Source: Lepidodermella squamata (lineage: Eukaryota > Animalia > Gastrotricha). From it: 64,000 nt of DNA. The DNA lies in the NCBI GenBank assembly GCA_047495785.1, contig JBLDXI010000054.1, positions 2,294,001 through 2,358,000 of the forward strand. The letters run 5' to 3'. The position numbers and the translations under genes are program-made. Shown here one piece after another: positions 44 through 57,670 of this stretch. The notes under the pieces were generated by a model. That model did no database searches. It was not told the origin of the DNA and was given only the letters and a program-made list of their open reading frames with translations. Every line of letters begins with the position of its first letter. The stretch's first letter is position 1.

Positions 44-2827
44 TCGGTTGAATACAAGCCCCCTCGCTGACCCATGTTCCATTATCCAAGCAAGCAATAA
101 TGTTCGTGCCTTCCAGCTCGAATCCTGACATGCAATTAAAAGTAGCGGTTATTGACTGGTATCCGGGGAGATCTCTTGAATTCGATCCGACGACGGCATT
201 CTCAGGGACAGGCACATCAGTTGGACAGGCTATGGTAAACAAATATAACGCAGGGTACTGAGCTGCAAAACAACTTACGAATCACGCATCGTCCTTTCAA
301 GCTCCAAGAATTTGTTGCAGTGATAAAGCAAACGTCGTGAGAGCCGATTAGAGAAAACCCGTCGTCGCAAATGATTGAACCACAGCACGAGTCGGGCGCA
401 TACTGGATCTTACCATGCGAAAGCCTCTTCGGCCTCGGGGTTAACACTAAAATATAATGAGCATAAATATATTTTAGTTTGGCTAGTTTAGCAAACTAGT
501 GGCGAACAACTCTTAAATTAAGGGTTCTAAATTTCGTTAAAAAGCCTACCTCTTAGTTTGACGATTTCGGCGCGTTCATCCCCACATCCACTTTGCGGCG
601 ACAGGCTCGAACAGCGACTAAACTTGGCGAATAACTGGACGAGTTTGTTGTAGCCAGCAGCCGATGCCCACTCAGAGGGCGAGTTTCCGTCTTCATCAGC
701 CTCGCATGTCGCATTGTATTTAGTTAGCAAGAGCTCGATCAGCGGGACGCAGTTTTGCTCAATCGCCATCCAGAGAAGTGTTTTGCCGCGTTGATTCTTA
801 TGAGACAGCGCAGATTTGAGTTGATCGGGGTTCAACCCAGATAGAAGAGAATCGATCATTTCAACGCCGTTGTCGTAACACCTCGCTGACTGATGAAGCA
901 TTGATCGGCTGGTTTCATCATCCTGGACAAGAGACGCGTAGTTTGAACGCGTAAACGCCTGGATTAGTTGGTTGTTTTCCGACTTCACCGCCAGCCCGAA
1001 TGGAGTGTCACCGTTCTTGTTTTTCTCTGTATGCAGGCCAGCGGAAGCTTCAAGCGAAAAAATGTTAGCAACCATTTCGGCATTTCCGTTCAAGACAGCT
1101 AGATGAAGGGCGTTGTCACCTGTGATTGAGTTGGGCAATTTTACGAGACTTGAATTAGCTTCAGCCAAAACCGAGAAGCATTGAGTCAGGTTTCTCTGAA
1201 CAGCAAGCAGCATCGGCGTGTTGCCTTTCGAATCAAATTTTGCCAGATCCATCGAACCGGCGAACTCTTTCAGAAAAGCAGCATGATTTCTCCCTACAGC
1301 CAGATGAGCCACCGTTTGATCCAGGCTGTTCACAGCCGATAAGTCAGCATTCCGTGTTTTAACAAGGTAACGAATGAATTCGATTGGCTTTCCTTCATCG
1401 ACAGCGACTAATAGAGGCGTCATACCAGTAGGACCTTCGAAGCCATCAGACGGCCAAGTTGGGAGGTTGATATCGCTGAAGCCAGCCTTCTCAAATAGAA
1501 AATCCACTGCTTCAATCGAGCTGGCGAGGTGCAATGCCGAATAGCCGCGAATATCGGTAACCCGGCTATCAATAGTGAACTCGTCATCAGTCAGCACCTT
1601 GGCGAAGGAGATGGCATTTGATGCGATCGCCGTTAGGAATGGAGTCCTGCCCATGCTATCCTTTTCATCAGCCAAGCCCGGGAATTTGGCGAGAAGCTTG
1701 CTAGCAATTTGCTTGCTGGTTGCATCACTTATTTTCATCGCACGTAAATCGGTGTCAGGCAGCAACGCCATGGCATGAAGAGCGTTGCCAACTTTAGAAA
1801 ACGCTTCGGCAGAATCTTCTATTTTCGCCTTGAGAAGCTCATCGAGAACGTTGATTTTCCTCAGGAATGCAGCAAGGTGTAGCAAAGAGCCGATGCCTTT
1901 CGAGATTTTCTGGCGATTAGCGGTCGTCAATTGGCATTGCAAGGCAACTGAGTTCGGCTTGTTTTGAAAGTACTTTCTAATGAAAATGAAGAAGCCCTTT
2001 CGCACGGCATAGCAGAGTGGGGTGTCACCATTTTCATCCTTGGCTGTAGCGTCGAAGCTAGAGGAAGCTACGCTGCTGCTCAGCCAGTTTTCGTAATTGC
2101 TCGCAGCAATCATGTGGGAGGTTGAGAATGTACCAGGCCGAGCAGATCTTGCTTCAAGAGTTTCTGTCAACATCGCAATTAGATTTTTCTTGCCAAGTTT
2201 GACTGCCAGAGATAATGCCAAATCGCCATTAGCATCCATGTGAAATCGATCAGCCTTTTTATCGAGAAGAAGCTGAACGATTTTTTCCGCATTGGGTGAA
2301 GTAGATTTAACAGCGTAAAACAACGGAGTTTGACCTTGATCTTGAACTGCATCCAGCATTTCCACGGACGCGAGGCTGAGTTTTTCGGCCTGATTAAGCA
2401 GCTTCTCAACAACACCAAAATGACCCCTGAGACAAGCCAGGTGAATGGGCTGTTCGCTTTTCTTGTTCTTCGCGGTAACGAGACTTGGGGTAGCTTCGGC
2501 AAGGAGCAGCTCCGCAACATCCGATGCGCCATGGAGAGCCGCAAGGTGAAGAAGAGTGTCGCCGTTCAATTTCCTCAAATCTTCAAACCGATGTGAACCA
2601 TACTGTTGATCAGTCGCGACCTTCTTGAATTCTACGACTGAATTTCGTCGTATTATCGGTTCGAGTACAGAAAGAAGCTCTTCGATGCTATTGATGGCTG
2701 GAGCTGGGCTTATCGAGTTTTCTTGTTTCAGTTTGTCGATGTTAGAGTCAGTCAGGTAGTCAGGGTAGTCAGGGTTGGCACCGCTGGATACCGCACTCAC
2801 GGCAGCCAGCAATATCAAGATTTTCAT
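44..2827 (-). CDS. Secreted ankyrin-repeat + CCP/sushi protein, paralog 1 (runs off the left edge)
   Basis: ATG at 2827 gives signal peptide MKILILLAAVSAVSSG. Exon 1 (2827-550) holds about 18 ANK repeats (GDTLLHLAA, GQTPLFYA, GDNALHLA...). GT-AG phase-1 introns lead to CCP exons 446-279 (IICDDGFSLIGS...WSLKGRC) and 229-44 (CP...FNCMSGFELEG...C...GTW...C). Confidence 0.88.
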
Positions 2828-3859
2828 ATGTAAGTAAATTATTTTGTATTTTGTATCGAGTAAGAAAGATGTCCTACAATATGAAAAAAGAAATTGTTGA
2901 ATAATTGTTGAACTCAATTTCAACAACAGACAATATCAATACTATCAATAATGCCAAGCTGCTTTTTATTATCAGGGCGGGGAGGTAATAGATGCGGGAA
3001 TTCGGCATAAGTATTAAAAGAGGTTAGAAAAATAATTTGGCTTGGAAATTCTGGCTTCGCCGCAGCACAATTACATCACTCATGATTAAATGACAAGCAA
3101 TAAAAATTATAATGTGATAGATTTTGATTGTTTACAGGGCGTTCGCGTGATAATACTCTGGGTGAGCTAAAAATAGCTACAAAAAAAACTAAAATGCATG
3201 CAAAAAGTAGCAAAGCTATTTTTAGAAGAGTATTATTACGCGAACACCCTGTAGAATGGGATGAATATTGCTTGGTGAAATCGGTTGACATAGCAGAATG
3301 AAAACCCAGCAGAATGAAATTGGGTAGAAATTTGCCAAATTTGCAGTGTTGAAGTTTCACCTCAAATGCCTTTTAAGCTAGAAATATGAAACATTGAGCT
3401 GGCAAATTTTAATTAATGACTGATAATGTCACAAATGTCGCCTTGCTGAAACACGTGTCACAAAAATATCGCGTGGATTGGTAAACATAATTTCAGGTTA
3501 ACATAGCAGCTGGTCATCAACAAATTGCTGATTTAATATTAATCTTTTGATAGACATTGTCTAGTTAATGAAAAGCAGCGACTTGCCACCTATGCCAACT
3601 GTGAATCTGGAAATATCCTGCCAGGAAAAATCAAGGTTTAAGGATGAAAAATCCAAGTTACCAGTGGAGTCCACACTTCATATTTTTAAGATTTTTTATT
3701 CCTCATTCTGATTTCTTAACAAAAAAGCTCCGATTTTCCAAGTTTCATCGTGATTTTCAGGTTTCGTTTCCATCAACACAACGTTTAATCGCGTTTATTA
3801 ACAAGAAAAGGCCATGGTTAGTATTTATATTTATATCATATTCGAGGCCTGCTCCCCTT

Positions 3860-6249
3860 TCAAGACCCTCGGCCGCTAGCGCTAGCTAAAATAGCAGCAT
3901 CCGTCAAGTCGCAGACATAAGTGTCATAGCTATGATCATCGATGCATTGCTCTGACCAGTGGGCAATCGCAAAAACACATGAGCACGTGCTTGCTCGACC
4001 GCAGTTGTAAAACCGCGACTCGTTCCTATTAGAGCCAGATCCACACTCAGACTCAAACAACCGCCCAGCGGAGCATTTGCAATCTTCCAATAAATTATAC
4101 CTGGAGCGAACATGCATGCTCCTGAGCAGCTCATATTCAATTGCTTCGTTTCGAGGCGACAATTGCCGGGCGAAAAACAGCGGTGTCTTGCCGTCATTGG
4201 TTTTCGCAATCACGTCAGCCCCCCTCGACAGCAATAACTTCACAGTATCGACGTGGCCTTTCCTAACTGCATGCATCAATGCCGTTCGACCATCATTTCT
4301 TCTAAAATCTACATTCGCTCCTTTATCAAGCAGCAGTTTTACGTTATTTGTCCTGCCATTCCAAGCCGCATCGAAGAGTGGCGCTGCGCCGTCACTCGTT
4401 TCTTTCACATTAGGATCAGCCCCGCGGTCCAGCAACAGTTTCAAATTATTCTCATAGAACGAAGAAGCGGCGATGTGCAACGGCGCGCAGCCGTACGTGC
4501 TCTCTAACGCATGGATATCAGCACCGTAATCCAGAATAACTTTTATCAAGTCACTAGGAGCGTCAGCTAGGAGAGCTCGATGGAGAACTGTGAACTCTGA
4601 CATTTGATAACCGGTGGTTATATTATCCGGGCATCGCCAGTTAACGTCAAGACCCAGAGACAGCAAGCGCTTGACCTCTGATGTGTTATAAGCGACAGCT
4701 GCATCAATTAATTGCCTTTGAAGGGTTACATTCACCTAGAAAAAGACCAATCCATTAAAGAGATTCGTTAGATAACGGAACATACCGATTTCTGTTGAAA
4801 AGTTACTGCTTTCTGTTGCAAAAGCCTTATTATTGTTGCATCTACTTTGTTTTCTTCGGCAAAATCAAGAGCATTCTGTCCAGTGCTTTTTCTGATAAAC
4901 TTGTCTGCACCCCGCTTGATAAGCAATTCTACAATTTTAGTCGCTCCACATGCGGCTGCTTCAATGAGAGGCGTTGCGCCGTCGGATCGCAAGGCATTGA
5001 TGTTAGCACCAGCATCGAGTAGAGCATTGACCACGTCCTCGTTACGGGACCACGCTGCATAATGTATAGCCGCATTTCCGTCCTCATCAGTCTCGCCAAT
5101 GTCAGATACGCGTGGGATGAGAGCTTTCACAGCATTTACGTCACCGACTGCCGACGCCCTGCGAAGACGAGCGCCCAAAGTTGTACCCTGATGAAGAAAC
5201 AATTTCTCAAACCTATTAAAATTTGTTAATGATCAAGTTACATTATCTGGCCATATTTCCTTCAAAGTTTCTGTTTGACCTGCCCTTGTAGCCATATCGA
5301 GTGCTGATGCACCTTCCGGATACCGAAGTTTCCGAATAGATGTGTCGGCTTCTCGTTCCATTAGCACCTTGGCAACCGCTGGCGCACCATACCAGGCAGC
5401 TTCTATCAAGGCTGAGGCACCGTCAGTTCGCAAGGCATTAACGCTAACGCCAGCATCAAGCAAAGCGGCTACAACGGCGGCGTGATTTCGCTGCGCGGCT
5501 TTGTGTATCGCCATATTGCCATCCGAATCTCGCCACGTCAGATCAACGTTAGGCATTGAAATCAAGCGTTTAACTTCATTCAAGTCGCCGCTCCCAGCAG
5601 CTTCAATCAGGGCATTTCGAATTTTGGCTAGTGGCAAAGTTGTAGTCGGGGTGCTTTTCGTCGTTGTAGGAGCCAATGTAGGAGCGACTGTTGGAACTGA
5701 AATAGGAGCTTATATTTAGTAGATCTGGGCAAATAAATCATTGCACCCACCCTCGAACTACCTAACTTTAGCCTTCCATCTTTGCAAAAGGTTTGGAATT
5801 TCATGAAAATGTACCTCTAGGTTTGAATATTTCGTTGCGCGGCTGGCTGGAACAGCGTTCAAAATTGGCGAATAACTGTACGAGTTTGGTATAGCCAGCT
5901 GCAGATGCCCATTGTAATGGAAAGTTCCCGTCCTTATCAGCCTCGCATGGCGCTTTGTATTTAGTTAGTAAGAGCTCGACCATCGGGACGCAATTTTTCT
6001 CGATCGCCATCCAGAGAAGTGTTTTGTCATGCTGATTCTTCCGAGATAACGCTGTATTCAATTGAATGGGGCTCAAACCGGATAGCACGGCATCTACTAT
6101 GTTCACGCAAGTGTCGAAACACCCTTCAATTGGCTGAGTTGAGTTCATCGAGTTTAGCTGTTCGATGTTTGACCAGTGTTGTCTCTTGACCGCGGATTTA
6201 TATCGCTGGACACCATGCTCACGGCAGCAAGCAATATTAATATTTTCAT
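3860..6249 (-). pseudogene. Paralog 2 of the ANK family: internally deleted, frameshifted first exon, then Thr linker, 3 ANK modules and a Cys-rich tail
   Basis: Signal peptide MKILILLAAVSMVSSD is nearly identical to paralog 1. The frame shifts near 6190-6170, and homology jumps from the N-terminus (SNIEQL...) straight to the last repeats (CFD...KTLLWMAIEKNC). Downstream exons 5696-5242, 5187-4807 and 4735-3860 are open and splice in frame. Confidence 0.7.
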
Positions 6250-7310
6250 GACTAATTTTGTATCGAATTTCACTGTTCTCGTTTCCGGTTCTATAACACA
6301 AAGCAGCAGTAGAGGTAGAGAAAACATTAAACCGAAGATCAAAGATGAGTTTTACAATCGTACTAAGCTGTTTCTTCTATGCTTAAGTTTCAAAGCGCGT
6401 TATCCAGCATTGACCGACGGAGGAACGGATGGGAGTTCACCATATAGACGAATACGATTATTCAACAGTTGGAGTCAAAGCCTCTCTGGAAGGTTTAGAG
6501 TTGACGCGATAGCCCACTTTCGTAAAATAACATCTGAGAAGCGATCTGGTACTACATCGTTTTCAAAGTCATTTATAAATACGCATGATTTTTCAGGAAT
6601 TTTTCAGGAATTTTCCCTCGTTATTTTTAAGAATTTCATAATTTCGCAGTATTATTCCTCTGCAATGTCCTGATAAGACAGTCAAGTTTCTTGTATTGAA
6701 TTACTTTTTTGTCTCGAGGTTCACTTGAGCGCGGCTCGCGGCATTTTTTCCGACCCCGTTGACTACGGCAGAAAAACAGCAGACGAGACATTCCCATGCC
6801 TACTCCAACAGGTGGTAACCGTGCCCCATCTTTAAATGAACACCGATCATACGGTCTTGTATCTCGGTCTGAACTTTCGATTCGACTGTTGCCAGCCACG
6901 TATGGGACTGTGAAATGCCATTCAATTTCGTTCTAAGACTCAGTCGCCCGATTTTAGGCTTTTTAGAAAAGAGTGTGGTCACTCTTTGAAATTTACCCTG
7001 GATTATAAATTTTTATCATGGCATGCAACTATGCCAAGCTTCACGATGGAACTCAATCATGACTATGTGTTTTGTGCTCTAAAATGTGATGTACCATGTC
7101 GTGAATTATTTTATAAAGAGTGACCTTCGCTCCCAAATGTAACTGTTTTTCAAGATGTCGCTTCACCTAGAGCACACGACCTTACAGCACGCGCCATACG
7201 TTCGGCAAAATGGTGCCGAAAGCAATTCGTAAAATCGTTTCATTCTCATTTTCAATTTCATCATTTTTATTACATCGAATTTTTAACCTTTACTACTTGA
7301 AGTTTTATTC

Positions 7311-10300
7311 ATGAGGGCTTTGTTACTGTTGGCGGCGCTAAGCGCTGCCTATGCTTCAGATGTAGACACCACAGAGCAACTGACTACAACACCTGAAGCG
7401 GCTCTCATCAATGAGCAAGCCTTCTCGGCTCTCGAAGCGGCGATTAAAGCTGATTCGGTTTCTGACCTCAAAGAAACAGCTCTTCAACAATACGGTGAAT
7501 CATTCAAGCTGAATGAATTGAAGAAATCAAACGGAGACTCGCCGCTTCACATCGCTGCGTTACACGGCGCGATAAAGGTTGTCGAATTTCTGCTCGATGA
7601 AATCAGCGTTCCTGTTACAGTGAAGAACGAACGCGGTGAACTTCCGATTCATCTCGCATGTCTCAATGGTCACTTGCAAGTTGTCGAGCGGCTGGTCAGT
7701 CAATCAGAGAAGCTGAACTTGGCACCGAACCAAATGCTTGACGCTGTTCAAAATCGAAACCAAACTCCGTTGTTCTATGCCGCGAGAGCCCTTTCGGAGA
7801 AAGTTGTTCGATTTCTTCTCGACAAGAAGGCCGATCGTTATCACATGGATCTTCATGGCGATTTCGCCTTGTCATCCGTTCTGAAAAAAGGCGACGGGAG
7901 CTTGGTCAAGCTGCTTAGCTCTGTTGATGGCGATGAGAAGCTCAGTTCAGTCACGATGTCTCACGTGGCTGCCGCGAGTAACTACATCGCATTCTTGGAT
8001 GATCAATCCGCTTTCGACGCCACTGTCAAGGATGAAAATGGTGATACTCCACTCTGTTTTGCCGTCCGAAAGGGCAATGCTGGTTTTATCAAAACGTTTT
8101 TCAAGAAAGCGCCGCATATGGTTGATTCTAGATCGCTGCAGTGTCAATACACGATTTCGAATCGAGATCCCGTTTCTAAGTCAATGGGCGTCGGTTCTCT
8201 TCTCCACTTGGCGTCGTTTCTACGAAAGCTCAACATTATCGATCTGCTGATCGAGGCTGATTTCACTGTTACTGGCGAAGATCAATATGGCGGCAATCCG
8301 ATTCATGCAATGGCTTTGCTGACTGAAACAGGCGCTGCTAAGTTGGAAATCACAACTGCTGATCATGAAAAGACGCTGCGAAGGCTCGATTTCGGTACTT
8401 ACGGCCTCATTGAAGAGAAAGACCGTTTCGGCAGGACTCCTTTCTTGCTGGCCGTATCGTCGGATTCAATCTCGTTCGCAAAAATTCTGGCCAATGAAGA
8501 ATTCCGAGCTCATAAAGTTGCTGTAGAACATCGTGGCTACTCAGCTCTTCATCTAGCAAAATCGATTGCTATGTACGACTATCTATTTTCATTCGCTGAA
8601 TTCAAAGACGTGAATGTCCGATCTGTGGTTGAGGACGAAGGCCCCAGTGGTATGACGCCTGTTCTGGTCGCGATTGCTGAGTCTAAGCCGATTGAGCTGA
8701 TTCGATATCTAGTCAAAACCCGCAATGCTGATTTGACTGCTTCGAACTCTCTGGAGCAAACTGCGGCTCATTTGGCAGTTCAATCGAACTTCGTTGCATT
8801 TCTTGAAGAATTCGCTGGTTCTCTGGAGCTGAAGACATTCGACTCGAAGGGTTACACGCCTCTGCTGGCTGCCATCGCTGCGAACCGATCGGAGATTGTT
8901 GATATTCTTCTAAAGTCGGATGTTAACCTGCTTTCCAAGGCGAATTCGTTGACTGGCGATAATGCTCTTCACCTGGCAGTTTCGATTGGCAATTCTAAGA
9001 TTCTAGCGTCGATTCTAGCAGCAGCAGCCTCTTCTGAGTTGGTATCCCTGCCTAATGAAAAAGGCAAAACCCCGCTTAGGCTGGCAATCGAAACTCGGAA
9101 ACAGGACGTCATTCAAGCCGTAGTATTCCAAGGTGGTTCGAGCTCTTTCCTGGATATCGAAGACTTCAGCAAATCTCTCCTTCATGAATCAGCGAGGTGT
9201 TTCGATGACGGCGTTAACATGGTCAATTACTTGCTGTCTAATTTGAACGATGAGCAACGTAAAGCGGCTCTTGAGCGTAAGAACGAGCATGGCAAAACGC
9301 TGTTCTGGACTGCTGAACTTCTGAACAGAATTGTGTTCCTTTGGCTAGCCTCTTGCTTCGTGAGTACAACGATGTGTGTGAGCCTGATGCTGATGGTGAC
9401 TCGCCTGTTCAATGGGCCACTGCGGCTGGTTTCAAGAAGATGGCTAAGCTCCTGTCGAAATTCGAGCGTTGCACGGGTCAATCAGAGCAAATGGTATGCT
9501 CCAATGACAGCGCTGAAATTGCTAGGCAACGAGGTACAATTTTATTAGCATCTCTGAAGTTCATCTAGGAAACTTTCAAACAACTATTTTCGAATTTTTT
9601 AATTTTATATTAAAAAATGATTTCTTAAACTTACAAATTATTCACAAATGATTTCTAATTTTTTTATTTTTCAATTTTTCAAAACTTTTTTGCTTATAGA
9701 CTCAATGCCCTATATTTTGAAAATCATAGAAATTAATTATTTTCAAATTTAAAAAATTAGTCTTCCAATTTTTGCAGCAAATGTTGAATTTAAGCTTTTT
9801 GAATTTATTTTGCCGACAATCAAGTCATCAGCTTGTTAAATTTGCTCACAGTTTTGACGCCGAAGCCGAAAAAGGTATCACACGGTCAGATCAAATACCC
9901 GAAAGACAGCTGCTGCGGTTTCATCACTTGCGACGAGGGCTACATGCTGATTGGCTCGAGCGAAGTTTGTTTCAGTGAAATGTCAAATTATTGGGTATCA
10001 AGCGGTCGCTGCTCCTTGGGTAAGCAGGCTTTTATAGCAAAAATTTGCAATAATATGTGCATTTTCTATTCCGCAGCATGCCGCGAAAAATTCACGCTAC
10101 CTATCAACGCCGAGGCGGAAACCTTCGAAGAGTCACCGACAAAAATTGTCTTCAGCTGCAAGCCTGGATTCGACCTCGAAGGAACGAATACTATTGTTTG
10201 CAAAGATGACGGCACCTGGTCTGCTTTGGGAAGCTGTGTCCAGCTGAGTAAGAACATTTTGCATGATGTTATTTTTAGGTCAACGTTTATTGCCAAAGTT

Positions 10301-13300
10301 CCATAGTGGATTTTTATTATAAGTTTGCAATTATTAAAAATTCAAAATTTCGATTTTATTGTTTAAATCCGACATTGATTTTGATTTTTGAATGTTAAAA
10401 TTTTACTCGTGAACTTTTTTAAACAATTTCTATTTTCTCAAGAATAATTCAAAATAAATAAATATTGATTACTTTAGCTTGCAAGGACCAAATCGTCACC
10501 CCGGCAAACGCCGGACTTCTTCAGCAACCGCAATACCCCGCCCCTCTTGGAACTTCAGTTACATTCGAGTGCAACGAGGACTTCGTTCTTCAGGGCTCAA
10601 ACACTATCACCTGCCTCGAGCTCGGTGCTTGGTCTGAATCTGGAAAATGCGTTAAAGGTATTTGATGGATAAGCTACATAAGGAGTTTTACATGTTTATG
10701 TTTTCACAGAGGAAAAGCTTGGCTGTGGCAAAGTGCCTGAGGTTACAAATGGGAAAATCGCATGGGAGGCGGCTAATACGGAGTATAATAAATACGGAGT
10801 GTTTGCTACGGGAACAGTCTTCTCGATCACTTGCGAAGCTGGCTATAAGCTGCACGGCCCTAACTTCATCTTGTGCCGAGCGGATCGCACTTGGTCAGAA
10901 GCCGGCATTTGCTCATTGATCGGTTTGTTTTCCGCCATTCCTCAATTTAAGATTCATTCAATTGTTTCGACTTCAACAGGATCATGCTCCGTGCCTGAAA
11001 TTCCGTATGGTACGTTTGTCGACACTTTCGGACGAGAAGTGCCAGCAAAGGAAAATTTGAAGCCGGATTCTTCGATTATCCTTCAATGCAAACTTGGCTA
11101 TGAAGTCGTTGGCGGATCAACCGCCTCAATCTGTGCTGACAACTCCACCTGGGCTCCCGAGTTCGGGCAATGCGCCAAGAAAGTAAGCACTTGCTGTTTT
11201 TATTATAATATCGCTTACTATTTTAATACAGGACGTGTCTAAGGAACAGCAACAGCTTATTCAGGCTGCCATTGATGGTAACATTGATCAAGTAAACCAA
11301 CTGCTCGATCTCGGTTATTTGAACATCGACTGGCGGGACGAAAGCAAACGCACCAGCTTCTCGATCATCAACGGCACCGCCCTGCATCTGGCTCTTGCTT
11401 CGAACGCCCCAATCGAACTCGTCCGCGCGCTTGTTACCAAAGGCCACGCCAATGTTAACATTAAGGAGGACAGCTTCGACTTCACGCCTCTTGGACTCGC
11501 TTCAGCTGTTTGCAGCGTCGATGTCGTGAAGTTCTTGCTCGAACAAGGGGCTTGCCTCGATTGTAAAACCGATCGCCTCGGCTCAACTGCTCTAATTATA
11601 GCCGCGGGAAGTGGTCAACTTGAAACTGTTAAATTCCTGGTTGAACAAGGCGCTGATGTCCATGCCAAGAAGACTGATGGCGATTCTGCTTTAACTGCCG
11701 CGATCAAGTTCAAGCGTGCTGAAATTGCCAAGTTCCTCATCGGCAAGGGAGCTAATGTTTACGAGGTTGCTACGGAAGATCGAAGTGCCATTGTTCCAAC
11801 TGATGAGCTGTCCGAAGTTTTCCAGCAGATCGAATCGATCAAAACTACCACAACTACGGTAGGATTGAAATATTGAGATGAATTTTGCACATTCCTCTTG
11901 TTCAGACTACAACCACCACTATTCCGATCGTGGTGATTCAGCAGCAACTTGTCGATGCGGCTGCTATCGGTGATCTGGCTGAGGTCAAACGTCTTCTCTC
12001 TTCTCGCAACGTCGATCTTCACTGGCTGAGCGCGGAAGGCAAAATGGCTATCCACAAGGCTGCTGCGAACAATTATGCACAAGCTGTCGACGAGCTCCTG
12101 ATCGAGGGCGCCAATATCGATGGTTTGACTTTCGACAAATCAACACCGTTGATTGAAGCTGTTGCTAACGACGCCGTTATGGTTGCTACGCTGCTTGTCA
12201 ACCGTGGTGCGAACGTCGCGATGAAGAGGTTGGATGGTCTTTCAGCGATTGACATTGCCCTTAGGGCCGGGAAAATCGAGCTCGTCAAGATTTTATGGCC
12301 GGCTGATGAGGTTTGATTTCATTTATGATTCGAATTTTTGCTATATTTCACTTTTTCAATAGAATGCGACTGGGAATAAGAAGCTCCTTAGAGCCGCTGC
12401 GATTGGCGATTTTGACGCTGTGAAGAAGTTGCTTGAGACCGGTATCGATGCTGGCAGTACGGACGAAAACGGCAATGCCGCCATTCATTACGCGGTTTGG
12501 TCTCGAAACGCTAATATAGTCGCGGCTCTGTTGGATGGCACTGCCAACATCGACGCCCAGCGATCTGACGGCTCTACGGCTCTGGTCGATGCGACATCGG
12601 CCGGAATTGCCCCTATCATCAAGTTGCTCGTCGATCGTGAAGCTGACAGGTCGATTCAAACTAATTCAGGGAAAACAGCGCTCGACATTGCCGTCGAAAA
12701 TAAGCGGACAGATTTCATCACAATCCTGGAACAAGGCTCTGTATGCTATTTTATCAGAAAAAGCTTGTGATTATCGCATTTTCCCCTGTAGCTTATCATC
12801 GCGGCTGCTGATGGCAATTTGGAAGAGATTGAACGGCTACTACATCTTGGCGTTGACGTTAACTGGCGCAATCCCACGGCTCTGGATCACGAAACCTGGA
12901 AAATCACCAACTACACTGCCCTGCACCGGGCTCTTGTCGCCAATGCGGATATTGAAGTGATCGAAAAGCTGTTGAATGCGAAGGCCGATATCAACGCTGC
13001 AGAATCTAGATACCGCGCGAAGCCCGTTCACATTGCTGCTGCTAGTAGCCGCGAGGAAAACCTTCGCGAGTTGGTCGGACGTGGAGCTGAGCCGAACGCG
13101 AAACAAGTCGACGGGTCGACCCCGCTCTACGAAGCGGCCTTCAGCGGACGGTACACAATTGCTGAGTTTTTGCTATCGAGTGGCGCAGATATCGAAGCCA
13201 AGCGCAATGACGGGGAAACTGCGCTGATGGCTGCGATCAAAACCAATAACGTCGAGGTTGCGAAGCTGCTTCTCAATAAAACGTCGAATATCATCGCAAG

Positions 13301-13616
13301 ATCGTTGTCCGGTTCGACGCCGATCAGCCTTGCGAAGAAACTGAATCCGCCAAATGAAGGTGAGGAAATGGTCTACCTCGTCCTGAGTAAAATGCAAGAG
13401 ACTGGCAAGTACAACAAGCAGATTGAGTGCGAGTGTTCCAAAGGCGAAGCCTGGACCCAGCAATGTAAAGCAGTCGAGGATCGCACTTCCAAAGACCCGA
13501 CCCGCTTCTACGCCTGTGGCAAGCCGTACAAATGTTCTTGCCTTTTCGCCATTGCGTACTACGATGAGAACTGCCCCCCTGGAGAAGACAGCACCTACGT
13601 CTGTGATCTGGAATAG
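7311..13616 (+). CDS. Paralog 3: signal peptide, about 18 ANK, 5 CCP, 4 ANK modules and an 8-Cys C-terminal domain (one frameshift at about 9315-9322 in this sequence)
   Basis: Signal peptide MRALLLLAALSAAYA. Inferred exons 7311-9533, 9852-10019, 10077-10247, 10478-10657, 10710-10922, 10980-11182, 11232-11858, 11906-12310, 12363-12740, 12792-13616, all with GT-AG introns and compatible phases. Confidence 0.82.
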
Positions 13617-14152
13617 CTCGGCCACAAACTTGTTTATTAAAAAGTCTTAACTGCCCAAAATGATCTTGAATCTTGACTCTCAACAGTTTCTTTAATGTCT
13701 GATAGCAAAATCTCGAACACAACATGTTTTAACATTCGTTTGATCAAAGCGTTCTTTTTTAATAAAATCACAATTTTCCAGTCACTTTTAATTTTCAAAG
13801 TCCGGAATCAGGCTCAAAGCAATCTTCTCGTAACTGTGGAAATCTTGGGATGAGCATATTCATTGAGGATTAAGCATAGGCTAAATCCTGTCTAACAGCC
13901 GCTGTATCAATGTGAATAATTTGACTTTGATGGAAACAGATCATCGAGTGACTGTTTAGAAAAACAGCACTCTAGAGTTGTTTAACCTTGAACAGAAATC
14001 GGACTTATTTACACGCGTGCTGTGCATGAACAGCGTGACAACTGGTGCAATTACAAAATTAGCCATCTTACATTGCACTGTGAGGTGATGTTTAAAATTC
14101 ATATAACTTCAATAGATTCAATACTCAAGAATCATTCGCATTAAGCGTTAGC

Positions 14153-16551
14153 ATGCTGTCAAATTTGCTGGCCGTAACAGCCATTTTCTTCATTGTTACT
14201 GATATCAACTTAGCCATCCTAACTAAACCTTATCGCATGTCAGTTCTCGAGTTGATTGCTTTCACGGGAAATCCGCCTGCAAATGGTTATGCCTGCCAAG
14301 TTGCATCTCAGATCGCTGTCGACATGGCTAACAACCGTTCAGACTTCCTACCAGATTATCACGTCGAAGTCCAGTTTGAAGACGAAATAGCTGGTCTCGC
14401 CGCTGCTCGTGCAACAGCAGCTTTCAGTCGAAGCTTTGAAAATGAAGGACGGCCAAACGAATTTCAATCTCCAGTTATAGCTGGGCCAATATTTTCAAGT
14501 AGTTGCAAATCGATCGGGCCTATTCTACCACATTTATCGTCCGTTGCAATTTCCATTGGATGCTCAGCCCCGTTTTTGACTAATCGCAATATTTACAAAA
14601 ATCTGTACCTGATGCGGTCAACTGGCGGGGTCCTTCTGTTCGCCCAGATGCGGCTCATCAAAGAAGTTGGTAAATGGCAACGCATTGGAATATTAGGCAA
14701 CGCAGGCAGTGCTTTTGATTACTCTTACGCTGCTTTACTTCAAAAATACGCCAGCGAGCAGGCGAAAGTTTCCATCTCTTACTTTGACATTGTCTTGGAT
14801 ATGGATGATGAGTATATGGTAGCTTTGAAGCAAAGCGACACGAGAGTTGTGGTGATTTCGATATCGATTGCAAGATTGATTTGGCGATTTCTGTGTCAAA
14901 GTTTCAAGTTTGGAATCACTGGCCCAAAATATGTTTTTGTGTTGTTAGGAGTGGCATTCAGCGATCCCATGATGCTTAGTGATCCAGTCTTCCCTGGATG
15001 CCCCAGAGCTGTTGCTATCGAACAAATGAAGGTAGGTTTTTGTGTTCGAGATTTCGTATGCAATTTTATAATTTTTCCTCTATCTCTAAGTTTTCATACT
15101 GGACCGCTCCAGTTCAATTTACAGATGAGCCAAACGTCCCATCCCATCTCGGCTACAGTTTGAACGAATTTGACGCAACTTTCGACCGATATACCAACGG
15201 AGTACGACCTTATGATTATGAAATACGACTCCTGTGCCACGACACCATGCTTCAAGGCCTAATAACCTTAGATAATGCCGAAAAAATGCTTAACAGTCGC
15301 TATAACATGTCATTACGCAACTTACGAGACCAGCCAGCATTGGTTGGTCGTATCGTCAATCAGTCAGCTATTTCTGTAGATTACATGGGCCTTAGAATGG
15401 GCCGTATGCGCTACAACAATCGTGGTGAGGTTGATGCTGATGTTCAAATGGTCAGTTATTGGACTCCTGAATCGAAGCTGCAGTATATATTCACAATACA
15501 TCAGTACCTGAACGGATCTGCGTACTCCTACGACAGCTATTGGATGAAGAAGCATCGAGAACCTATTTGGGTAACAAAGAACGGCATGCCTCCTAAGGAT
15601 CGAGTTCAAGTTGTGGAAATTATCAATGAAATTTCAACCGGTCTTTCGTACACTCTTATTTCCCTATTCTCGTTGAGCTTCATCACTCAGCTTTGTTTGG
15701 GTTTCAAGCTTCGTATTGCTATTAAATCGCCTCAGATGTTTGGTATTTGGATTCTAAACTTAGCTGGCATGGCATATTCGATTCAAACGAATCTTGCTCC
15801 AGAAATTCTGTGGAAGTTCCGAATTATACTTTTGGCACTTTCTTTCGCGCTGGTTAATGGCTCCTCAAATCTTCGCGCATTTTTTCTGCTACTTAATTCT
15901 TGGTTCGATTCGAAAAAACCAACTCAGCGTTCGCGCAAGAACACGAAAACCTCGCACGTGCAGCCAACCACCACTAACGAAACTAATCAAAGCACCTTCG
16001 ACACGAGATCACCACGCATCCCTTCGTCGCTAGAAGTAATGATCAACACCGAAATATTCCCGCATCAAGTTACTAGTTTAGCTAATTTGGATTCTCCACT
16101 GAATTTCGCGTGGACTTTGATTTTTGTGTTAATTAACGGGGCTATTTCTGGATTTTGGCTCTTAGGCGATCCGCTCATATGCTACGTATCCAGAAATCCG
16201 CCGGTGCTAAATGAAGCGGAAGACACTGTTGTACTGGTGTCATCGTGGGTATGTCAATCGAAAAATTATCCATCTTGGGTGGCTGGGCTCATTAGCCTCA
16301 ATCTGTCCGTAATGGCTATTGGGACCTTTTCAACCTTAAAGATGAGATTCAACGGATCTTTCAAAAATATTCCGGAATTTACTCTAACGTCATTGTCTAT
16401 CTTGAATTTAGTGACATTTTTTGTCGGAACACTTCTGATCGTAGTAGTTTTGAGAGATATAGTGGCTCAGGAGATTACCATAGCTTTTGCTACTCTCATT
16501 TTATCATCTTCGATGTTCTGGATGTCATTGTACATGAAGATCAAAACGTGA
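14153..16551 (+). CDS. GABA-B-like class C GPCR (Venus flytrap domain + 7TM), divergent
   Basis: Signal peptide, then AVDMANNRSDFLPDY, GP..SS.C, KFGITGPKYVF (ANF-receptor VFT motifs). One intron near 15032-15090. Seven hydrophobic segments including W...DPL and PE; no cysteine-rich domain. Confidence 0.8.
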
Positions 16552-16707
16552 TAGTGGCAACAAATATGAACTAAACTAAGACGAAATAAAACCAAGTCGT
16601 TCCGATGATCGCGTGTCGCAACAAGCTTACATGTGTTGCAAAAACCTGCACTTTGACTGCTGACATAAAACAAGAGTATCTAATAGTAGAATTAGAACGT
16701 CGTGGAA

Positions 16708-19700
16708 ATGAGCACTATTCTGTTTCTGTTAGTTTTACCTGCCGTAGTGAGTGCTTTTTCTACCTCCGATACGGTTTCAGTGCCTGATTCGATTCAGAAT
16801 GATAACACCATTATTGCTCAAATTGTGCCATTGATACAAGCAGATTCGATTGCAGATATCAAGGAAAAAGTTCGGTCGTTTTTGGTCAATACAACGTCAC
16901 TAGCGTCTCGGCAGAACTCAACCGGCGATACATTGCTCCACGTATCGGCCTTTTATGGGGCTTCAAAAACTTTCATGTTTCTCGTCAGTGAACTTCAAGC
17001 TGATATTACAGCTAAAAACAACAACGGTGAATTGCCAATCCATATTGCCTGCCTAAATGGTCACTTGGAAATTGTGAAATTCCTCTTGCAAGAAGCAGCA
17101 AAATCGAACTTCGCACTAGGCCAAATGATTGATGCCAATCAGAACGACAATCAAACGCCATTGTTTTACGTCGCCAAATCTTTGTCGTCAAATGCTGGGG
17201 ACATTGCTCGGTTGCTACTTCGAAATGGTGCTGACAGGTACCACATGGATTTAAACGGCGAATTCCCACTTTCATACGCGATAAGAAGTGGCAATAAATT
17301 GGAAGATATTCTCGTAGGCGACATTGAAAAGATTCAGGAAAGAGCTGCACGCCCGAATTCGTTTTCGACATCACATCTGATAGCGGCGACTAATTATGAA
17401 GCGTTTCTGAATAATCACCTCAGTTTAGTGACCTTCGACCCGTTTGCCTTAGATGAGAGCGGCGACACTCCGTTATGTCTGGCTGTGAGAAAGGGCCACC
17501 CCAGTTTCATAAAGAAGTTCCTCGAGAAACGACCGGCTATGGCTAAATTGAATGCGATGAAGTCGACAACATGCCAGTATAATGTCAATAATCGTGATTT
17601 ATTAACAAAGTCTAAAGGTAGCGGATCTTTGATGCATTTAGCAGCTCATCTACGCTTGGCGAATTTTGTCGACCTGATGCTATGGGGCAAAATGGATGTA
17701 CCAGTCGATGATACGAATGGTGGCAACCCAATTCATGCGATGGCTCTTTTATCGGATGAAAATGCCCGGAAATTGAACATCACCGAGATCCATAGTGAAG
17801 CAATTGCCAGGCGGATTCTCGCAGTTGCGCCTGAGTTACTGGAAGGCAAGGATAGCTTTGGCCGGACACCATTTCTCACAGCTGTTGCAGAGAACTCGCT
17901 GTCTTTTGTGAAAATGATTTCGAAATTCGATTTTGGTTATCAAGCTACCGACAACCGTGGTTACTCAGCGTTACATCTCGCCAAATCTGTGGATATGATC
18001 GATTATTTATTCGAGCATTCTTTCGTCGAAAATGTTAACGTTCCATCTAGGCCGGTTAACAATTACGAAGGTCCGAAAAACATGACCCCATTATTGGTAG
18101 CTGTACTAGAGAGGAAGCCAGTGGAATTGGTGCAGCATCTTGTTTCATCTCGAGGCGCGAATTTGTCTGCTAAGAACAGCTTTGGCCAGAATGCTGCCCA
18201 TTTAGCAGTTGAGGCGAACAACTCAGCGTTTTTAGAAAGATTCGGCGGATCTATCGATTTGAAGAGCCGTGCCGTAAAAGGGAGCACTGCATTGCTAGCG
18301 GCGATTCGAGCCAATCTTACCGATTTGGTTGGAACGCTGCTAAAAATTGACCCGCAGCTAGTTAAGCTTGATAATTCGATTACTGGCAATAATGCTCTTC
18401 ATTTGGCTGTTTCAACACGGAATCTCGAGATTCTACAGTGGATTCTAGCTGTCCCAGGTTCTGACGGTTTAATCACCCAACGGAATAAGGAAGGCATGAC
18501 TCCAGTTGATTTTGCTTTTTCATCGGGCTCTTCCGAAATCATCCTAACTCTACTTCAGCTCAAGCCGGGAATCATCTTCGAGTTTGACTCGTTTGGTCGC
18601 CCGGTAATACATCAGGCCGCGACTTGCTTCAACAACGGCGTTGAGACGGTTGACACCCTGTTATCTGGGCTTGATCCCGATCGACTTGAAACAGCATTGA
18701 AAAGGAAAGATCAGCTCGGCAAGACTTTACTGTGGCTTGCGGTCGAACAAAACTGCGTTCCATTGGTTGAATTATTGCTCGGAAAATTCAACGTGTCTTG
18801 TGAAGCCGATGAAGATGGAAATGAACCCCGGCAGTGGGCGATGGCTGCTGGCTTCAGCAAGTTGGCTGAGTTACTCTCAAAGTTTGACCAATGTTCTGTT
18901 GCATCCGAGCAGAGTGCTTGCGTGAGCGAAAGGAGCGAATTCTCTACTTTTAAAGGTAATTTTAGATGTGATACCTACGCCAAAACTATATGTAATTCAC
19001 TCTTGTTAGCTCTAGTGCCAAGGCCGAAGAGAGTTCTGAATGGGAAGATCAAGTATGCAGGAAAAGACTGTCCTGGCTTAATTATTTGCGACGAAGGCTA
19101 CACGCTGATTGGGTCTGCTAAAGTTCGGTTTGTATCGCGCTCCAACTTCTGGACAATCACCGGCCATTGTGCTAGAGGTTTGTCTCTTGATTCATCTTGG
19201 ATGGCTAATTAGTGAATTTCGATTACAGTATGTCAAGACGAAATACCAGTTCCACCTAACGCCCTGATTGAAACAGAGACGACGATGAAATCGCACGCTC
19301 CAATCGCTTCGGTGACCTTTCAATGCTTATCTGGTTACCAGCTTGAAGGTCCTAATACAATCAATTGCCTCGAAAATGGCACGTGGTCTCAAGCTGGGTC
19401 TTGCGTTCAGCTCAGTAAAATTTCTACAGTTGAATGACTATTTTTCAATTCTTCTTTTAGCTTGCATTGATCAATTATCGATGCCACCAAATGCCGTCAT
19501 GGAAGATTTTCCCGATGTCCCGGCTAGTCTTGGAACCACTGCTTCTTTCCAGTGCTTCCCTGGTTACGAGCTTCATGGTTCGAATACGATGGTTTGCACC
19601 GATACTGGCTCATGGTCTGAGCCAGGTGAATGCATCGAAGGTACGTGATGCACTGGAATTTTGTTCCCTACCTCATCTCTTGATCCTAGTGAGTGCGCAA

Positions 19701-20402
19701 GGGTGCGGTCCTGTGCCTGAAGTGAAAAATGGGCGAGTTGATTCTGCGAGTGACGAATTCATCTTCGAAGTTGGAACTATGATGCAAATTCAATGCGATG
19801 AAACTTACGAAATTCAGGGCGCGAGCTTCGTCGTATGTACTTCTAACTTCACGTGGTCACCGCCGGGTAACTGCGTTCGAAGAGGTATTACGGCTTCTTT
19901 TATCACCATTCGAAAGTGAATAAATCGTTTTCAGAATCTTGCGCTGTCCCTGAGATTATGAACGGCAGAGCTGTTAATTTGGAAGGCAATGAGCTTACAA
20001 TCAATCAGTCTGTGGCGATTGATACTGCTATTATTCTTCAGTGCCATCCCGGGTACGACGTTTTTGAAGGAGCCTTAGGATCGATGTGCCGAACTGACTC
20101 GACGTGGACCCCTGCATTAGGCCGCTGCATTGAAATCGTAGGTGGCTCGAATGCGCTTTATTCAAAGCCTTAACCCGTTATTATTTCAGACAACATACGA
20201 AGATTCCTCACGTTCATTTGTGCCGAGTGCGGATAGCATGTCGAGAATGACGAACTTCAAAGTACTTCGAGAGCGAAAGTCTCAAGTGGCTCTGAATACT
20301 GGAGCGTGCAACAACCTGCTAAACACCGAACACTTCATTTACCTAGTTTTGTTGCCATTATCTCTTGTTAAATTTATGAATTTTCTAATGTCGCTTCAAT
20401 AA
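16708..20402 (+). CDS. Paralog 4: signal peptide, about 18 ANK, 5 CCP and a hydrophobic (GPI-like) C-terminus; appears intact
   Basis: Signal peptide MSTILFLLVLPAVVSA. Exons 16708-18955, 19010-19177, 19229-19414, 19461-19640, 19690-19884, 19935-20137, 20190-20402. Ends ...NTGACNNLLNTEHFIYLVLLPLSLVKFMNFLMSLQ*. Confidence 0.88.
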
Positions 20403-20742
20403 ATTTTGTTACCGCCATTTTCTTGTCTGGATTTGAAGATTAGAGTTTATAGTACATAGTACATAAAATGAGCCATGTAGGGACGACTCCATTACAATAT
20501 CACTCAATGAGTGATTGTTTGGAAACGTAGTACTTTCAGTTACTTTTATCTCTCTTTTTGCCTTTTACAAAATAAGGTGGCCAAATATAAATGAGTCTTA
20601 AATCAAAAGCTGATTAGGTATTCATTCTTATCAAAAGTGGCAAACAAGTAGTTTAACCAACGATAACCAACGATAATACCACTAAATGTAGCTCATTGTT
20701 TTCCAACCGTCTCTGAAAAAGGGAAGTCAGGTCACTTGAACA

Positions 20743-21634
20743 ATGGTCAGCTTTAAAATTCTCAATAGCTTCCGATTTCTAACATTTTGTCTTTGCTACT
20801 AAATCAGGATTGCTCGGTGTGCTTCGAGAGGTACGATTCGTCAGCTCGCATCCCAAAAAGCATGCCCAATTGCCCCCACACGTTCTGCTTACATTGTCTG
20901 AATCAGATGGTTCGAAGCAGCGAAATCATATGCCCAGAATGCCGAATCAAAAACCCTGTCGGACGATCAGGAGTGAAAGGTATATTACACTCCTTAAATT
21001 TGTACATGGAAATTGCAAGCTTGATCATTAGATTATCGCACAAACATATCGATTCAAAGAGTTATCGAGCAGATGCAAGAGAGAGAAACACCAGTAGCGT
21101 CACCTAACCAAACCACTGGCTTAAGACCATTAGCAAATACCGTTTCTGTCACGGCTCCGGCTGCTTCTGCAAAATCTTCCAACTTCGTTAGAGTTACATC
21201 AACGGTGCAAGCACCTGGTTCGGGACCAAAAGTCGTTATTAACGTCGCTGTAAGAAATCCTCAGCTGCAACAGGCGCAAATTATTGGACCGGGGTGTAGT
21301 ATAGCCTCGACAGCTCGAATCGAGCCCGGCGCTCGGATCGGCACAGGTTGCAGAATCGAGGACTACGTTGTCGTTAAAACTGGGGCTACTGTCGGAACTG
21401 GCGCAAGCGTCAAATCAGGTGCAGTTATCGACAACGATGCTAGTGTTGGAAGTAAGGCTTCTTGGTTTGACGATATAACCTTAATAATAAATTATATCGG
21501 CAACAGCAGGAGCAAATATCGGTAGCCAGGCCCATGTATCAACTGGTGCTAAAATCGGAACGGGAGCTGTTGTCGCACCTGGGGCGAGAGTGCCACCCTA
21601 TTTCGAACTCTCAACTGGCAGCGTTTTCAGATAA
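20743..21634 (+). CDS. RING-finger + hexapeptide-repeat (left-handed beta-helix) protein
   Basis: Spliced M|DCSVCFE...CPHTFCLHC...CPECR (RING-HC), then IGPGCSIASTARIEPGARIGTGCRIEDYVVV...VGTGANIGSQAHVSTGAKIGTGAVV hexapeptide repeats. Three short GT-AG introns; TAA at 21632-21634. Confidence 0.8.
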
Positions 21635-56926: not shown

Positions 56927-57670
56927 AATACAAAGGAAGCGTTGTTGTAGTACGCTTCCTGCTTTTCCGATGGTTAAGTTATGCTCGCCCGCGTAGCACG
57001 AGCTGCAGTTATAAGCTAGCAAAGGTGTACTGGCGTGTTCATGTAGTATAGTACTCTCGTGTATTCATCAATACCATACTTGTTCTTATAAAGGCTTTAT
57101 GCACTTATGCATCTACTTGTTGTGTGGCGCGCGTATATATGTATTATTCATGAAAAAAGACGACTGCGTGTATTTAGGCTTTGCGCTCTTCTTTGGTCAT
57201 TCAAAGAGAGGCTATACAGGCATTTTGCGGCTGCGTGAACAGCTGATACGCTCGCAAATAGGCGCGTTCTGTGTTGAAGCTGTATACACAAATATGACAT
57301 TCTCCACGTCATTCACAAGAGCACCAAACAATCCCCCTCGTCGCAGTGTTTGCTTTGTTACACTGTGTAAGCCTGGATCATACGGCTAAGATAAATCGGG
57401 TAAATAATGCGAAATAAATCGAATTTTGGGACGCAATGAAATAAAATCATCGCAATTATCGATGTCACCTAGGCAGCGGCGTCTAGCACTGGTTCACACC
57501 TTAAAACTTGAAACTAAGGCGTTTGCGATGAAAAAAGAATGAGATCGATTTGAATGCAAATTTAATAGCAATTTAATGTTATTTTTGCGGTAAATCAATT
57601 TAAACCAGGGATATTGCTCAACATGCACGCACAACTGGTAGAGCCTGAAAACTTCTAGTTTCAATAAATT

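Follow-up and report, generated by a model that had tools for sequence, protein, structure and literature searches.

Ancient, clustered gene copies of Lepidodermella squamata that probably encode secreted ankyrin-Sushi mosaic proteins

This study analyzed a 64,000-nucleotide stretch (hereafter the window) of the compact genome of Lepidodermella squamata; it carries four related gene copies (P1 to P4). Three of them, P1, P3, and P4, have a common layout, in which a signal-peptide-like N-terminus is followed by an exon of approximately 2.2 kb encoding 18 ankyrin (ANK) repeats and then by Sushi/CCP exons. Together with P2, these genes form a small group of old, clustered copies, whose products are most likely secreted proteins that combine ANK repeats with Sushi modules. 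With a probability of roughly 60%, we consider P1, P3, and P4 to be old paralogs of lineage-restricted secreted mosaic glycoproteins that consist of a solenoid and a CCP rod, and P2 to be a rearranged copy. The union of ANK and CCP modules in one secretory-pathway protein is supported in silico, and the layout, a probable extracellular-ANK architecture, is real, unusual, and rare. In animals, ankyrin repeats are the textbook case of a protein-binding module that works inside cells, and we know of very few natural examples that act outside the cell.

Gene copies and splice models

P4, on the forward strand, is the sole complete and intact copy in the window. Its intact first exon (16708..18955) encodes a signal peptide (16708-16755) and the 18 ANK repeats, and it is followed by five CCP exons of phase 1-1, located at 19010-19177 (divergent), 19229-19414, 19461-19640, 19690-19884, and 19935-20141. 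The first intron comprises 54 nt and is open in frame, and the CCP introns measure 46-54 nt. The tail region (20190..20403) contains a doubtful last exon of 15 codons (20190-20236, ending in ICAECG) and an AATAAA sequence at 20398, both on the forward strand. Because the independent DNA read run X2 carries a stop at P4 codon 1065, within this doubtful exon, the C-x-C tail is not conserved. The P4 product comprises 1076 aa and has no membrane helix.

P1 lies on the reverse strand. Its first exon (550..2827) is intact, encodes a signal peptide (2783-2827) and 18 ANK repeats (Pfam E = 1.3e-52), ends in phase 1, and was delimited by the open reading frame, Pfam, and alignment; the frame reaches a stop a few codons beyond the donor. 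Sequence reading, alignments, and a tblastn search with P4 located a CCP1-like exon at 279-446 and a CCP2 exon at 44-229, both on the reverse strand. The gene is cut by the window edge, as had been noted, and runs off the window after this second CCP exon at base 44.

The first exon of P3 (7311..9533, forward strand) encodes a signal peptide and ANK repeats and contains a frameshift at about 9314-9321, where 8 nt replace the 3 nt of the paralogs ahead of the last approximately 70 residues of the ANK exon. The piece after the frameshift (9317-9533) still codes for repeats 17-18, in which none of the four conserved Cys is missing. The splice model and Pfam Sushi matches place five CCP exons on the forward strand at 9852-10019 (divergent), 10077-10247, 10478-10657, 10710-10922, and 10980-11182. 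Each of these exons begins in phase 1, and the last ends in phase 0. This last exon was joined by in silico splicing to four small ANK modules (Pfam ANK), encoded on the same strand by C-terminal phase 0 exons at 11232-11858, 11906-12310, 12363-12740, and 12792-13616. Ten consecutive Thr residues in a Thr-rich mucin-like linker straddle the 11858/11906 junction, and an orphan 8-Cys domain occupies approximately 13400-13613 on the forward strand. The resulting model is a single open frame of 10 exons and 1128 aa. AF2 predicted the C-terminal ANK module with a pLDDT of >90 and the 8-Cys part with a pLDDT of about 30. For the 8-Cys domain, we found no word-sharing homologue, no PDB sequence match below E = 1, and nothing in the ESM Atlas feature search.

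P2 (3860..6249, reverse strand, recognized by Pfam ANK) is a rearranged copy without CCP exons. Its signal-peptide frame (6154-6249) reaches a stop after only 31 codons and is shifted by +1 relative to a remnant of ANK repeats 16-18 (5815-6140), repeats 1-15 being lost. Further along the same strand are a Pro/Thr linker with an ANK module (5242-5696), a second ANK module (4807-5187), and a third with an 8-Cys end domain (3860-4735). P2 is 44% identical to the last exon of P3, and Thr/Pro-rich mucin-type linkers adjoin the ANK modules in both copies (PT-rich in P2, the Thr10 run in P3). Two of the four copies, P2 and P3, are broken as assembled; they either are damaged or contain assembly indels.

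The paralogs are approximately 45% identical, and their synonymous sites are saturated; the order of domains and the splice phases are kept across three copies. In P1, P3, and P4, each CCP exon is of phase 1 and carries one Sushi/CCP module, and this phase-1 symmetry is the typical CCP exon pattern. In the splice models, the introns are GT-AG introns of 46-57 nt, apart from two longer ones in P3, with in-frame joins at every junction. An Rfam scan of the window revealed no RNA family. Splice joints were observed neither in run X2, which is DNA (approximately 110x depth, even over introns), nor in run X1, which is sparse and of low depth and contains inverted chimeric joints. This result, the breaks in P2 and P3, and the short, open first intron of P4 would also fit a gene-model artefact, that is, an ordinary cytosolic ANK protein, with the hydrophobic start and the CCP exons either part of other transcripts or mere relics. 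Such an artefact is unlikely, given that the order and phases are kept in three copies at 45% identity, that the CCP exons lack both a start codon and a signal peptide, and that between-strain indels avoid all proposed exons: relative to X2, the indels of P4 are confined to intron 2 and the 5' UTR, with none in coding sequence.

Ankyrin solenoid and CCP modules

The ANK exons of P1, P3, and P4 matched Pfam Ank_2 with E = 1e-52 to 1e-59, and stacking the repeats by hand yielded 18, in agreement with the approximately 18 initially proposed for three paralogs. The exons display the tandem helix-turn-helix repeats of approximately 33 aa that form a solenoid in ankyrin-repeat proteins (PF00023/PF12796). 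The AF2 model of the region is a helical-pair solenoid (pLDDT 77), in which repeat 1 starts at residue ~70, after two short helices and approximately 50 residues past the signal peptide. The best PDB matches to this model were the 24-repeat domain of AnkB (Foldseek E = 2e-19), ankyrin-1, NOMPC, and latrotoxin. The membrane-binding domain of ankyrin-B and ankyrin-R (PDB 4rlv, 5y4d, 8cs9), the best structural match, is likewise a long superhelical ANK solenoid, and its inner groove binds extended peptides. However, it is cytosolic, has 24 repeats followed by ZU5-UPA-death domains, and shares only ~20% identity with the family described here.

Sushi modules were defined by a length of approximately 60 aa, four conserved Cys and one Trp, and a score that exceeds the gathering threshold of Pfam. 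In P3 and P4, modules 2-5 matched Pfam Sushi (PF00084) with 31.6-44.6 bits (cut-off 20.7) and E = 2e-7 to 2e-11, and the residues C, C, C, W, C are invariant in the CCP alignment A3. The first module after the ANK exon exhibited no Pfam match at E <= 1; compared with the family's own CCP profile, it was recovered by hhalign (91.7%, E = 7.7e-7) in its C-terminal C2-C3-W-C4 half only, and in P4, it has lost two Cys together. This module may be a CCP so divergent that it takes a profile comparison to recognize it. The five CCP modules annotated in P3 and P4 therefore stand as five exons each, whereas as Pfam Sushi matches they amount to 4 of 5 modules per gene. Regulators and adhesion proteins that have CCP modules without ANK repeats, such as factor H, CR1, selectins, and CSMD, are secreted proteins and resemble the present family in their strings of approximately 60-aa modules with four Cys and one Trp, one per phase-1 exon. 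Unlike the present family, none of them contains ANK repeats, and the first module of the family differs from theirs in that its N-terminal half is remodelled and the module scores below the Pfam threshold.

Secretory route and selection

All four copies begin with a hydrophobic segment: MKILILLAAVSAVSS (P1), MKILILLAAVSMVSS (P2), MRALLLLAALSAAYA (P3), and MSTILFLLVLPAVVSA (P4). Signal peptides were called by eye in all copies from the n, h, and c regions and the -3/-1 rule, which all four starts obey, in line with the proposal of a signal-peptide start in each paralog. In-frame stops occur 5 codons before the P4 start, 9 before that of P3, and 37 before that of P1. The signal-peptide-like start is kept as a feature across the paralogs, and its sequence diverges. 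No hydrophobic segment with KD19 >= 1.6 follows the signal peptide in any spliced model, and there is no membrane helix between the ANK and CCP regions. The sole TM-like stretch is an out-of-frame read-through of P3; the membrane-bound and soluble forms initially suggested had no basis other than this frameshift artefact, and the spliced models lack a transmembrane segment. From these sequence features, we infer that the protein is probably secreted.

CCP modules require disulfides, and Cys columns are conserved in the paralog alignment, as had been claimed, at P4 positions C115, C257, C289, C640, C683, C698, C729, and C738. The nine sequons listed for the ANK region of P4 are all present, but their number is not above chance: 12 were observed in P4 versus 9.2 expected from composition, 3 versus 6.1 in P1, and 2 versus 4.2 in P3. 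Sequon enrichment was rejected on this composition-based expectation, and only one sequon is common to P1, P3, and P4.

P4 bears the marks of a functional gene and is under purifying selection. Among 40 differences from X2 listed of 141, 16 are synonymous (745 sites) and 17 non-synonymous (2486 sites), which corresponds to a within-species pN/pS of about 0.3 (0.32); the allelic differences, again the 40 listed of 141, exhibit no clustering on the binding face. Between paralogs, dN/dS is not estimable because pS is saturated at 0.75-0.80.

CCP modules are frequent in complement-type proteins. Their presence here and the clustering of a multigene family could point to an immune or self-recognition repertoire that diversifies outside the cell and in which the concave ANK face would be the variable binding site. 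We regard this as very unlikely. Pairwise identity at the DARPin-type positions 2, 3, 5, 13, and 14 is 51%, compared with 54% in the framework (Fisher p = 0.36; three paralogs, low power), so that the binding face is no more variable than the framework; repeat positions 4-11 (hairpin and inner helix) are the best conserved among paralogs, and variation is greatest in the outer helix. Moreover, the paralogs are ancient, with saturated pS, the low allelic pN/pS comes without clustering on the face, and a membrane anchor or signalling domain is lacking. The diversifying ANK solenoid and its likeness to LRR-based immune receptors, both put forward in the initial annotation, find no support in the same binding-face variation or in the pN/pS of P4, and the immune-receptor reading of the family is unsupported.

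Relatives, known systems, and biological meaning

No homologue of the same layout was found outside this genome by the word-indexed, hmmsearch, or JGI metagenome searches. The word-indexed search with the P4 ANK exon yielded only generic ANK proteins of <=25% identity, none with Sushi. A three-paralog profile searched with hmmsearch against 1.84 billion representatives retrieved no colinear full-length relative in the best 150 matches, which were giant ANK proteins scoring via many stretches; Sushi is absent from the five matches whose single stretches are longest. The JGI metagenome scan yielded a single ANK match (25% identity), and the ESM Atlas feature search with P4 yielded generic ANK clusters. 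Literature on extracellular or secreted ankyrin in animals led only to latrotoxin, pathogen effectors, RON9, and phylloxera candidates.

The nearest precedents are Toxoplasma gondii RON9 and the latrotoxins. The combination of signal peptide, ANK, and Sushi is itself known from RON9, which has coccidian/Cryptosporidium orthologues and for which experiments showed a location in a secretory organelle (PMC3299665). Like the predicted proteins of the present family, RON9 unites a signal peptide and a block of ANK repeats N-terminal to Sushi in one secretory-pathway protein; it differs in being a protist protein whose ANK repeats number 6, whose Sushi is single, and which also contains PEST repeats and, at the C-terminus, a membrane helix (PMC3299665). 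The family described here has 18 ANK repeats, five CCP modules in phase-1 exons, and no membrane helix, and it belongs to an animal. It has the signal peptide, ANK, and Sushi of RON9 and lacks the C-terminal hydrophobic segment. This resemblance likely reflects convergence.

Latrotoxins lack a classical signal peptide, to our knowledge. These widow spider proteins (PDB 9goa, 9go9, 7ptx) have 11-20+ ANK repeats, act outside the producing cell (PMC4058007), and are structural matches to the ANK solenoid of the family. Their large N-terminal pore-forming domain and their C-terminal domain are missing here, where no large helical or pore domain precedes the ANK array, and latrotoxins have no CCP modules. 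The family might be secreted effectors or toxins directed against another organism (prey, host, or competitor), with the ANK solenoid acting in or on the target cell, by analogy with latrotoxins, apicomplexan RON9, and candidate effectors of sap-feeding insects that bear a signal peptide and ANK repeats. This possibility, which we rate as rather unlikely, draws on alpha-latrotoxin and latroinsectotoxin among the fold-search matches, on the union of signal peptide, ANK, and Sushi in the organellar protein RON9 (PMC3299665), on the abundance of ANK domains in phylloxera candidate effectors, and on the lineage-restricted, clustered family. However, there is no latrotoxin-type N-terminal domain, since the ANK array begins so close to the signal peptide, and no pore-forming or catalytic part; in addition, five disulfide-bonded CCPs and mucin linkers fit an extracellular role better than delivery to the cytosol.

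In the preferred reading, that of secreted mosaic glycoproteins, a cleavable signal peptide would bring the entire chain into the ER, and the mature protein would consist of an ankyrin solenoid of 18 repeats and, after it, five CCP modules in a rod, of which the first is divergent. Proteins of the P2/P3 type would continue with ANK beads of 4-5 repeats on mucin-like Thr/Pro linkers and end in the small 8-Cys domain. The solenoid may serve outside the cell as an elongated platform that binds proteins in the groove formed by its conserved hairpin and inner helix, and the CCP rod may act as a spacer or provide a second arm for binding. Through the mucin linkers and the Cys-rich end, the protein could be tethered or form multimers in the extracellular matrix, in mucus, or in secretory granules.

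If the preferred reading is true, ANK arrays would be usable by animals even under the oxidising and glycosylating conditions of the secretory pathway, and the family would be a natural counterpart to engineered DARPins, which raises the question of the extracellular partners that ANK solenoids bind. A bolder proposal, which we hold to be unlikely, is that the ankyrin repeat has become a general extracellular scaffold of this animal lineage, with dozens of signal-peptide ANK genes fused to CCP, mucin, or other ectodomains in an adhesion or recognition repertoire akin to Ig/LRR logic. If many such clusters in the genome hold, they would represent a lineage-specific reinvention of the extracellular toolkit via exon shuffling.

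Layout and gene models of the ANK-CCP locus

Six-frame reading and ORF lists placed four related genes (P1-P4) within the window's first 20.4 kb. The genome is animal-like, compact, and poor in introns, with a GC content of about 0.43-0.47. P1 (2827 down to 44, minus strand) continues past the window edge, P2 (6249 down to 3860, minus) and P3 (7311-13616, plus) lie head to head, and P4 runs from 16708 to about 20236 on the plus strand. A tblastn search of the whole window with the P4 model revealed no additional family copy beyond 20.4 kb. P3 and P4 are separated by an unrelated gene (14153-16551, +), which encodes an ANF_receptor ligand-binding domain. The stop of this gene is 156 nt from the P4 start codon (16552-16707, with AATAAA at 16585), a very tight and perhaps operon-like spacing.

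ANF_receptor-domain ORFs (14153-16551, +; 54686-55738, -, with 52807-53787, -; 23139-24952, +; E = 1e-14 to 2e-16) precede multi-pass hydrophobic ORFs, which Pfam 7tm models do not match; these combinations resemble divergent class C GPCR-like genes. An ANK-repeat ORF at 32023-33147 (-; Pfam E = 1e-51) has no hydrophobic start and is not related to P1-P4 by tblastn. The 632-aa ORF at 29462-31360 (-) matched no Pfam family. It finishes with a long, sequon-dense Thr/Ser/Asn-rich stalk and one hydrophobic helix, suggesting a mucin-stalked type I membrane protein whose ectodomain is unassigned. Hexapeptide (left-handed beta-helix) repeats occur in an ORF at 21073-21525 (+; Pfam Hexapep E = 9e-12), and the two large ORFs listed at 35532-37794 (+) were initially read as a putative piggyBac-type transposase split by an intron.

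In-silico splicing joined all proposed junctions in frame through GT-AG introns (46-54 nt in P4; 47-57 nt in P3 except two of 230 and 318 nt). The exon joins and 5' ends are predicted; the public run X1, labelled possibly RNA, yielded no splice joint and consisted of very shallow, inverted chimeric contigs. Phase 1 marks the end of the ANK exon and both ends of every CCP (Sushi) exon except the fifth of P3, whose 3' end is in phase 0 at a GTAAGC donor and leads into four phase-0 exons, each with one module of 4-5 ANK repeats. A ten-threonine run spans one junction of these C-terminal exons, and the last ends in an 8-Cys domain. P2 carries the same three C-terminal ANK modules and 8-Cys domain as P3 (44% identity); it has no CCPs, and a Pro/Thr-rich linker connects these modules directly to what remains of repeats 16-18. 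The 8-Cys domain (C-x-C ... C ... C ... C-x-C ... C ... C; P3 13389-13613, +; P2 3863-4114, -) had no detectable homologue, no PDB sequence match, and no confident fold (AF2 pLDDT of about 30). The spliced P4 model encodes a 1076-aa protein, and its proposed last exon of 15 codons is doubtful because a stop falls inside it in the independent public DNA run X2.

Modules and predicted topology

In P1, P3, and P4 the large first exon matched Pfam ankyrin families at E = 1e-52 to 1e-59, and stacking by hand gave 18 repeats of 32-54 residues per exon. The AlphaFold2 model of the P4 ANK exon (mean pLDDT 77, pTM 0.65) was a run of helix pairs, with disorder only in the first ~32 residues. Its Foldseek neighbours were the 24-repeat ankyrin-B domain, erythrocyte ankyrin-1, NOMPC, TRPA1, and latrotoxins (E down to 2e-19), and matching AlphaFold DB clusters held generic ANK proteins only.

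P3 and P4 each have five short exons 3' of the ANK exon, and the part of P1 inside the window has two. Scanned exon by exon, CCP exons 2-5 of P3 and P4 scored 31.6-44.6 bits against the Pfam Sushi cut-off of 20.7 (E = 2e-7 to 2e-11), and the first module alone gave no Pfam hit. Of the five CCPs initially annotated in P3 and P4, modules 2-5 stood, and the fifth "canonical" one, the first module, lies below Pfam detection. The first modules of the three paralogs are about 50% identical to one another and matched a profile of nine clear CCPs (91.7% probability, E = 7.7e-7). Because this match covers the C2..C3..W..C4 half, the first module is best described as a putative CCP with a remodelled N-terminal half. 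Two of its cysteines are lost together in P4, as expected if they formed one disulfide.

All four copies share a similar N-terminus: Met is followed by a basic or polar residue and a stretch of 10-13 hydrophobic residues, and positions -3 and -1 hold small residues. Upstream of these signal-peptide-like starts, an in-frame stop occurs at 5 codons in P4, 9 in P3, and 37 in P1. Because the sequence differs between copies, it is the signal-peptide-like feature that appears to be conserved. The spliced models contain no later 19-residue window with a Kyte-Doolittle mean of 1.6 or more; therefore, ANK and CCP must lie on the same membrane side in the predicted proteins. CCP modules are disulfide-dependent, and threonine runs and PT-rich linkers are typical of O-glycosylated secreted proteins; the Thr10 linker of P3 and the PT-rich linker of P2 adjoin ANK modules. 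The ANK exon alignment has eight conserved Cys columns, and P4 pairs such as C257/C289, C683/C698, and C729/C738 could form disulfides. The initial case from sequons in the P4 ANK region did not survive: 12 occur versus 9.2 expected from composition, P1 and P3 fall below expectation, and only P4 N536 is common to all three paralogs. Membrane-bound forms were likewise not borne out, given that the only anchor-like stretch of the locus is an out-of-frame tail of P3.

Lesions, age, and constraint

Two lesions had been overlooked initially. At about 9314-9321, P3 has 8 nt where P1 and P4 have 3, and its first ORF therefore stops at 9548, past the out-of-frame hydrophobic tail; downstream, a single frame of 1128 codons in ten exons stays open. 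P2 has lost repeats 1-15, and its P1-like signal-peptide ORF (6249-6154) stops after 31 codons, +1 out of frame with the repeat remnant; a weak predicted splice could yield a short signal peptide-mucin-ANK product. Long frames remain open 3' of each lesion, which points to damage of very recent date, to indels of the assembly, or to the use of alternative 5' exons.

The paralogs share 45-50% identity over the ANK exon and 39-52% over the CCPs, with pN of 0.33-0.36 and a saturated pS of 0.75-0.80, which indicates that the duplications are old. X2 reads, deposited under a different organism label, gave an even depth of ~110x across exons, introns, and spacers and differed from the window at 141 single bases in 5.9 kb (15000-20900; about 2.4%), which means high heterozygosity or a distinct strain. 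Among the differences listed, 33 fell in P4 coding sequence (16 synonymous and 17 non-synonymous), giving a pN/pS of about 0.32 from these alone (745 synonymous and 2486 non-synonymous sites), and all three indels lay in the 5' UTR or intron 2. These findings argue that P4 is a coding gene under constraint in two independent data sets.

Over the 18 repeats, the hairpin and inner helix (positions 4-11) had the highest pairwise identity, 0.58-0.88, and the outer helix had the lowest (0.27-0.50). Repeat-position identity in these three sequences, a low-power comparison, bore no sign of diversifying selection; positions randomised in designed ANK binders were not more variable than the remainder (Fisher p = 0.36; three paralogs, little power). 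This result and the P4 pN/pS speak against the proposed analogy to immune receptors.

Relatives and proposed function

Sequence, profile, metagenome, and protein-atlas searches found no relative with the ANK-CCP layout. The P4 ANK exon retrieved only generic ANK proteins in a word-indexed search, all lacking Sushi and at most 25% identical. No colinear relative came out of the exhaustive profile search, in which the five hits checked had ANK only; the metagenome scan gave a single weak ANK match, and the protein atlas gave generic ANK clusters only. A single-exon nucleotide-sugar-transporter-like ORF at 55880-57022 (-; 380 aa) also had only one word-indexed hit at E <= 1e-20, at 45% identity. 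The lineage is therefore poorly sampled, and the missing relatives are weak evidence of uniqueness.

Full-text literature searches retrieved no description of an animal extracellular ANK family. Toxoplasma RON9 comes closest in domain combination: this rhoptry-neck protein has a signal peptide, six ANK repeats, one Sushi, and a membrane helix at its C-terminus (PMC3299665). The proteins described here, in contrast, have no such helix, contain many more repeats and modules, and are encoded in an animal-type genome. Latrotoxins are animal ANK proteins that act outside the cell (PMC4058007), but they carry N- and C-terminal domains that P1-P4 lack. The candidate salivary effectors of phylloxera include ANK proteins with a signal peptide (PMC7376646), and an effector role is therefore a possible reading here.

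Apart from the sequon argument, the fifth CCP, and the lesions, the initial observation is real. The most likely reading, at a probability of roughly 0.6, is a lineage-restricted family of predicted secreted ANK-CCP mosaic glycoproteins. In this reading the ANK solenoid would act outside the cell as a platform for protein binding, with the CCP rod, mucin linkers, and Cys-rich end as spacers and tethers. The proteins would be modular, secreted products of phase-1 exon shuffling in which ANK is the unusual module.
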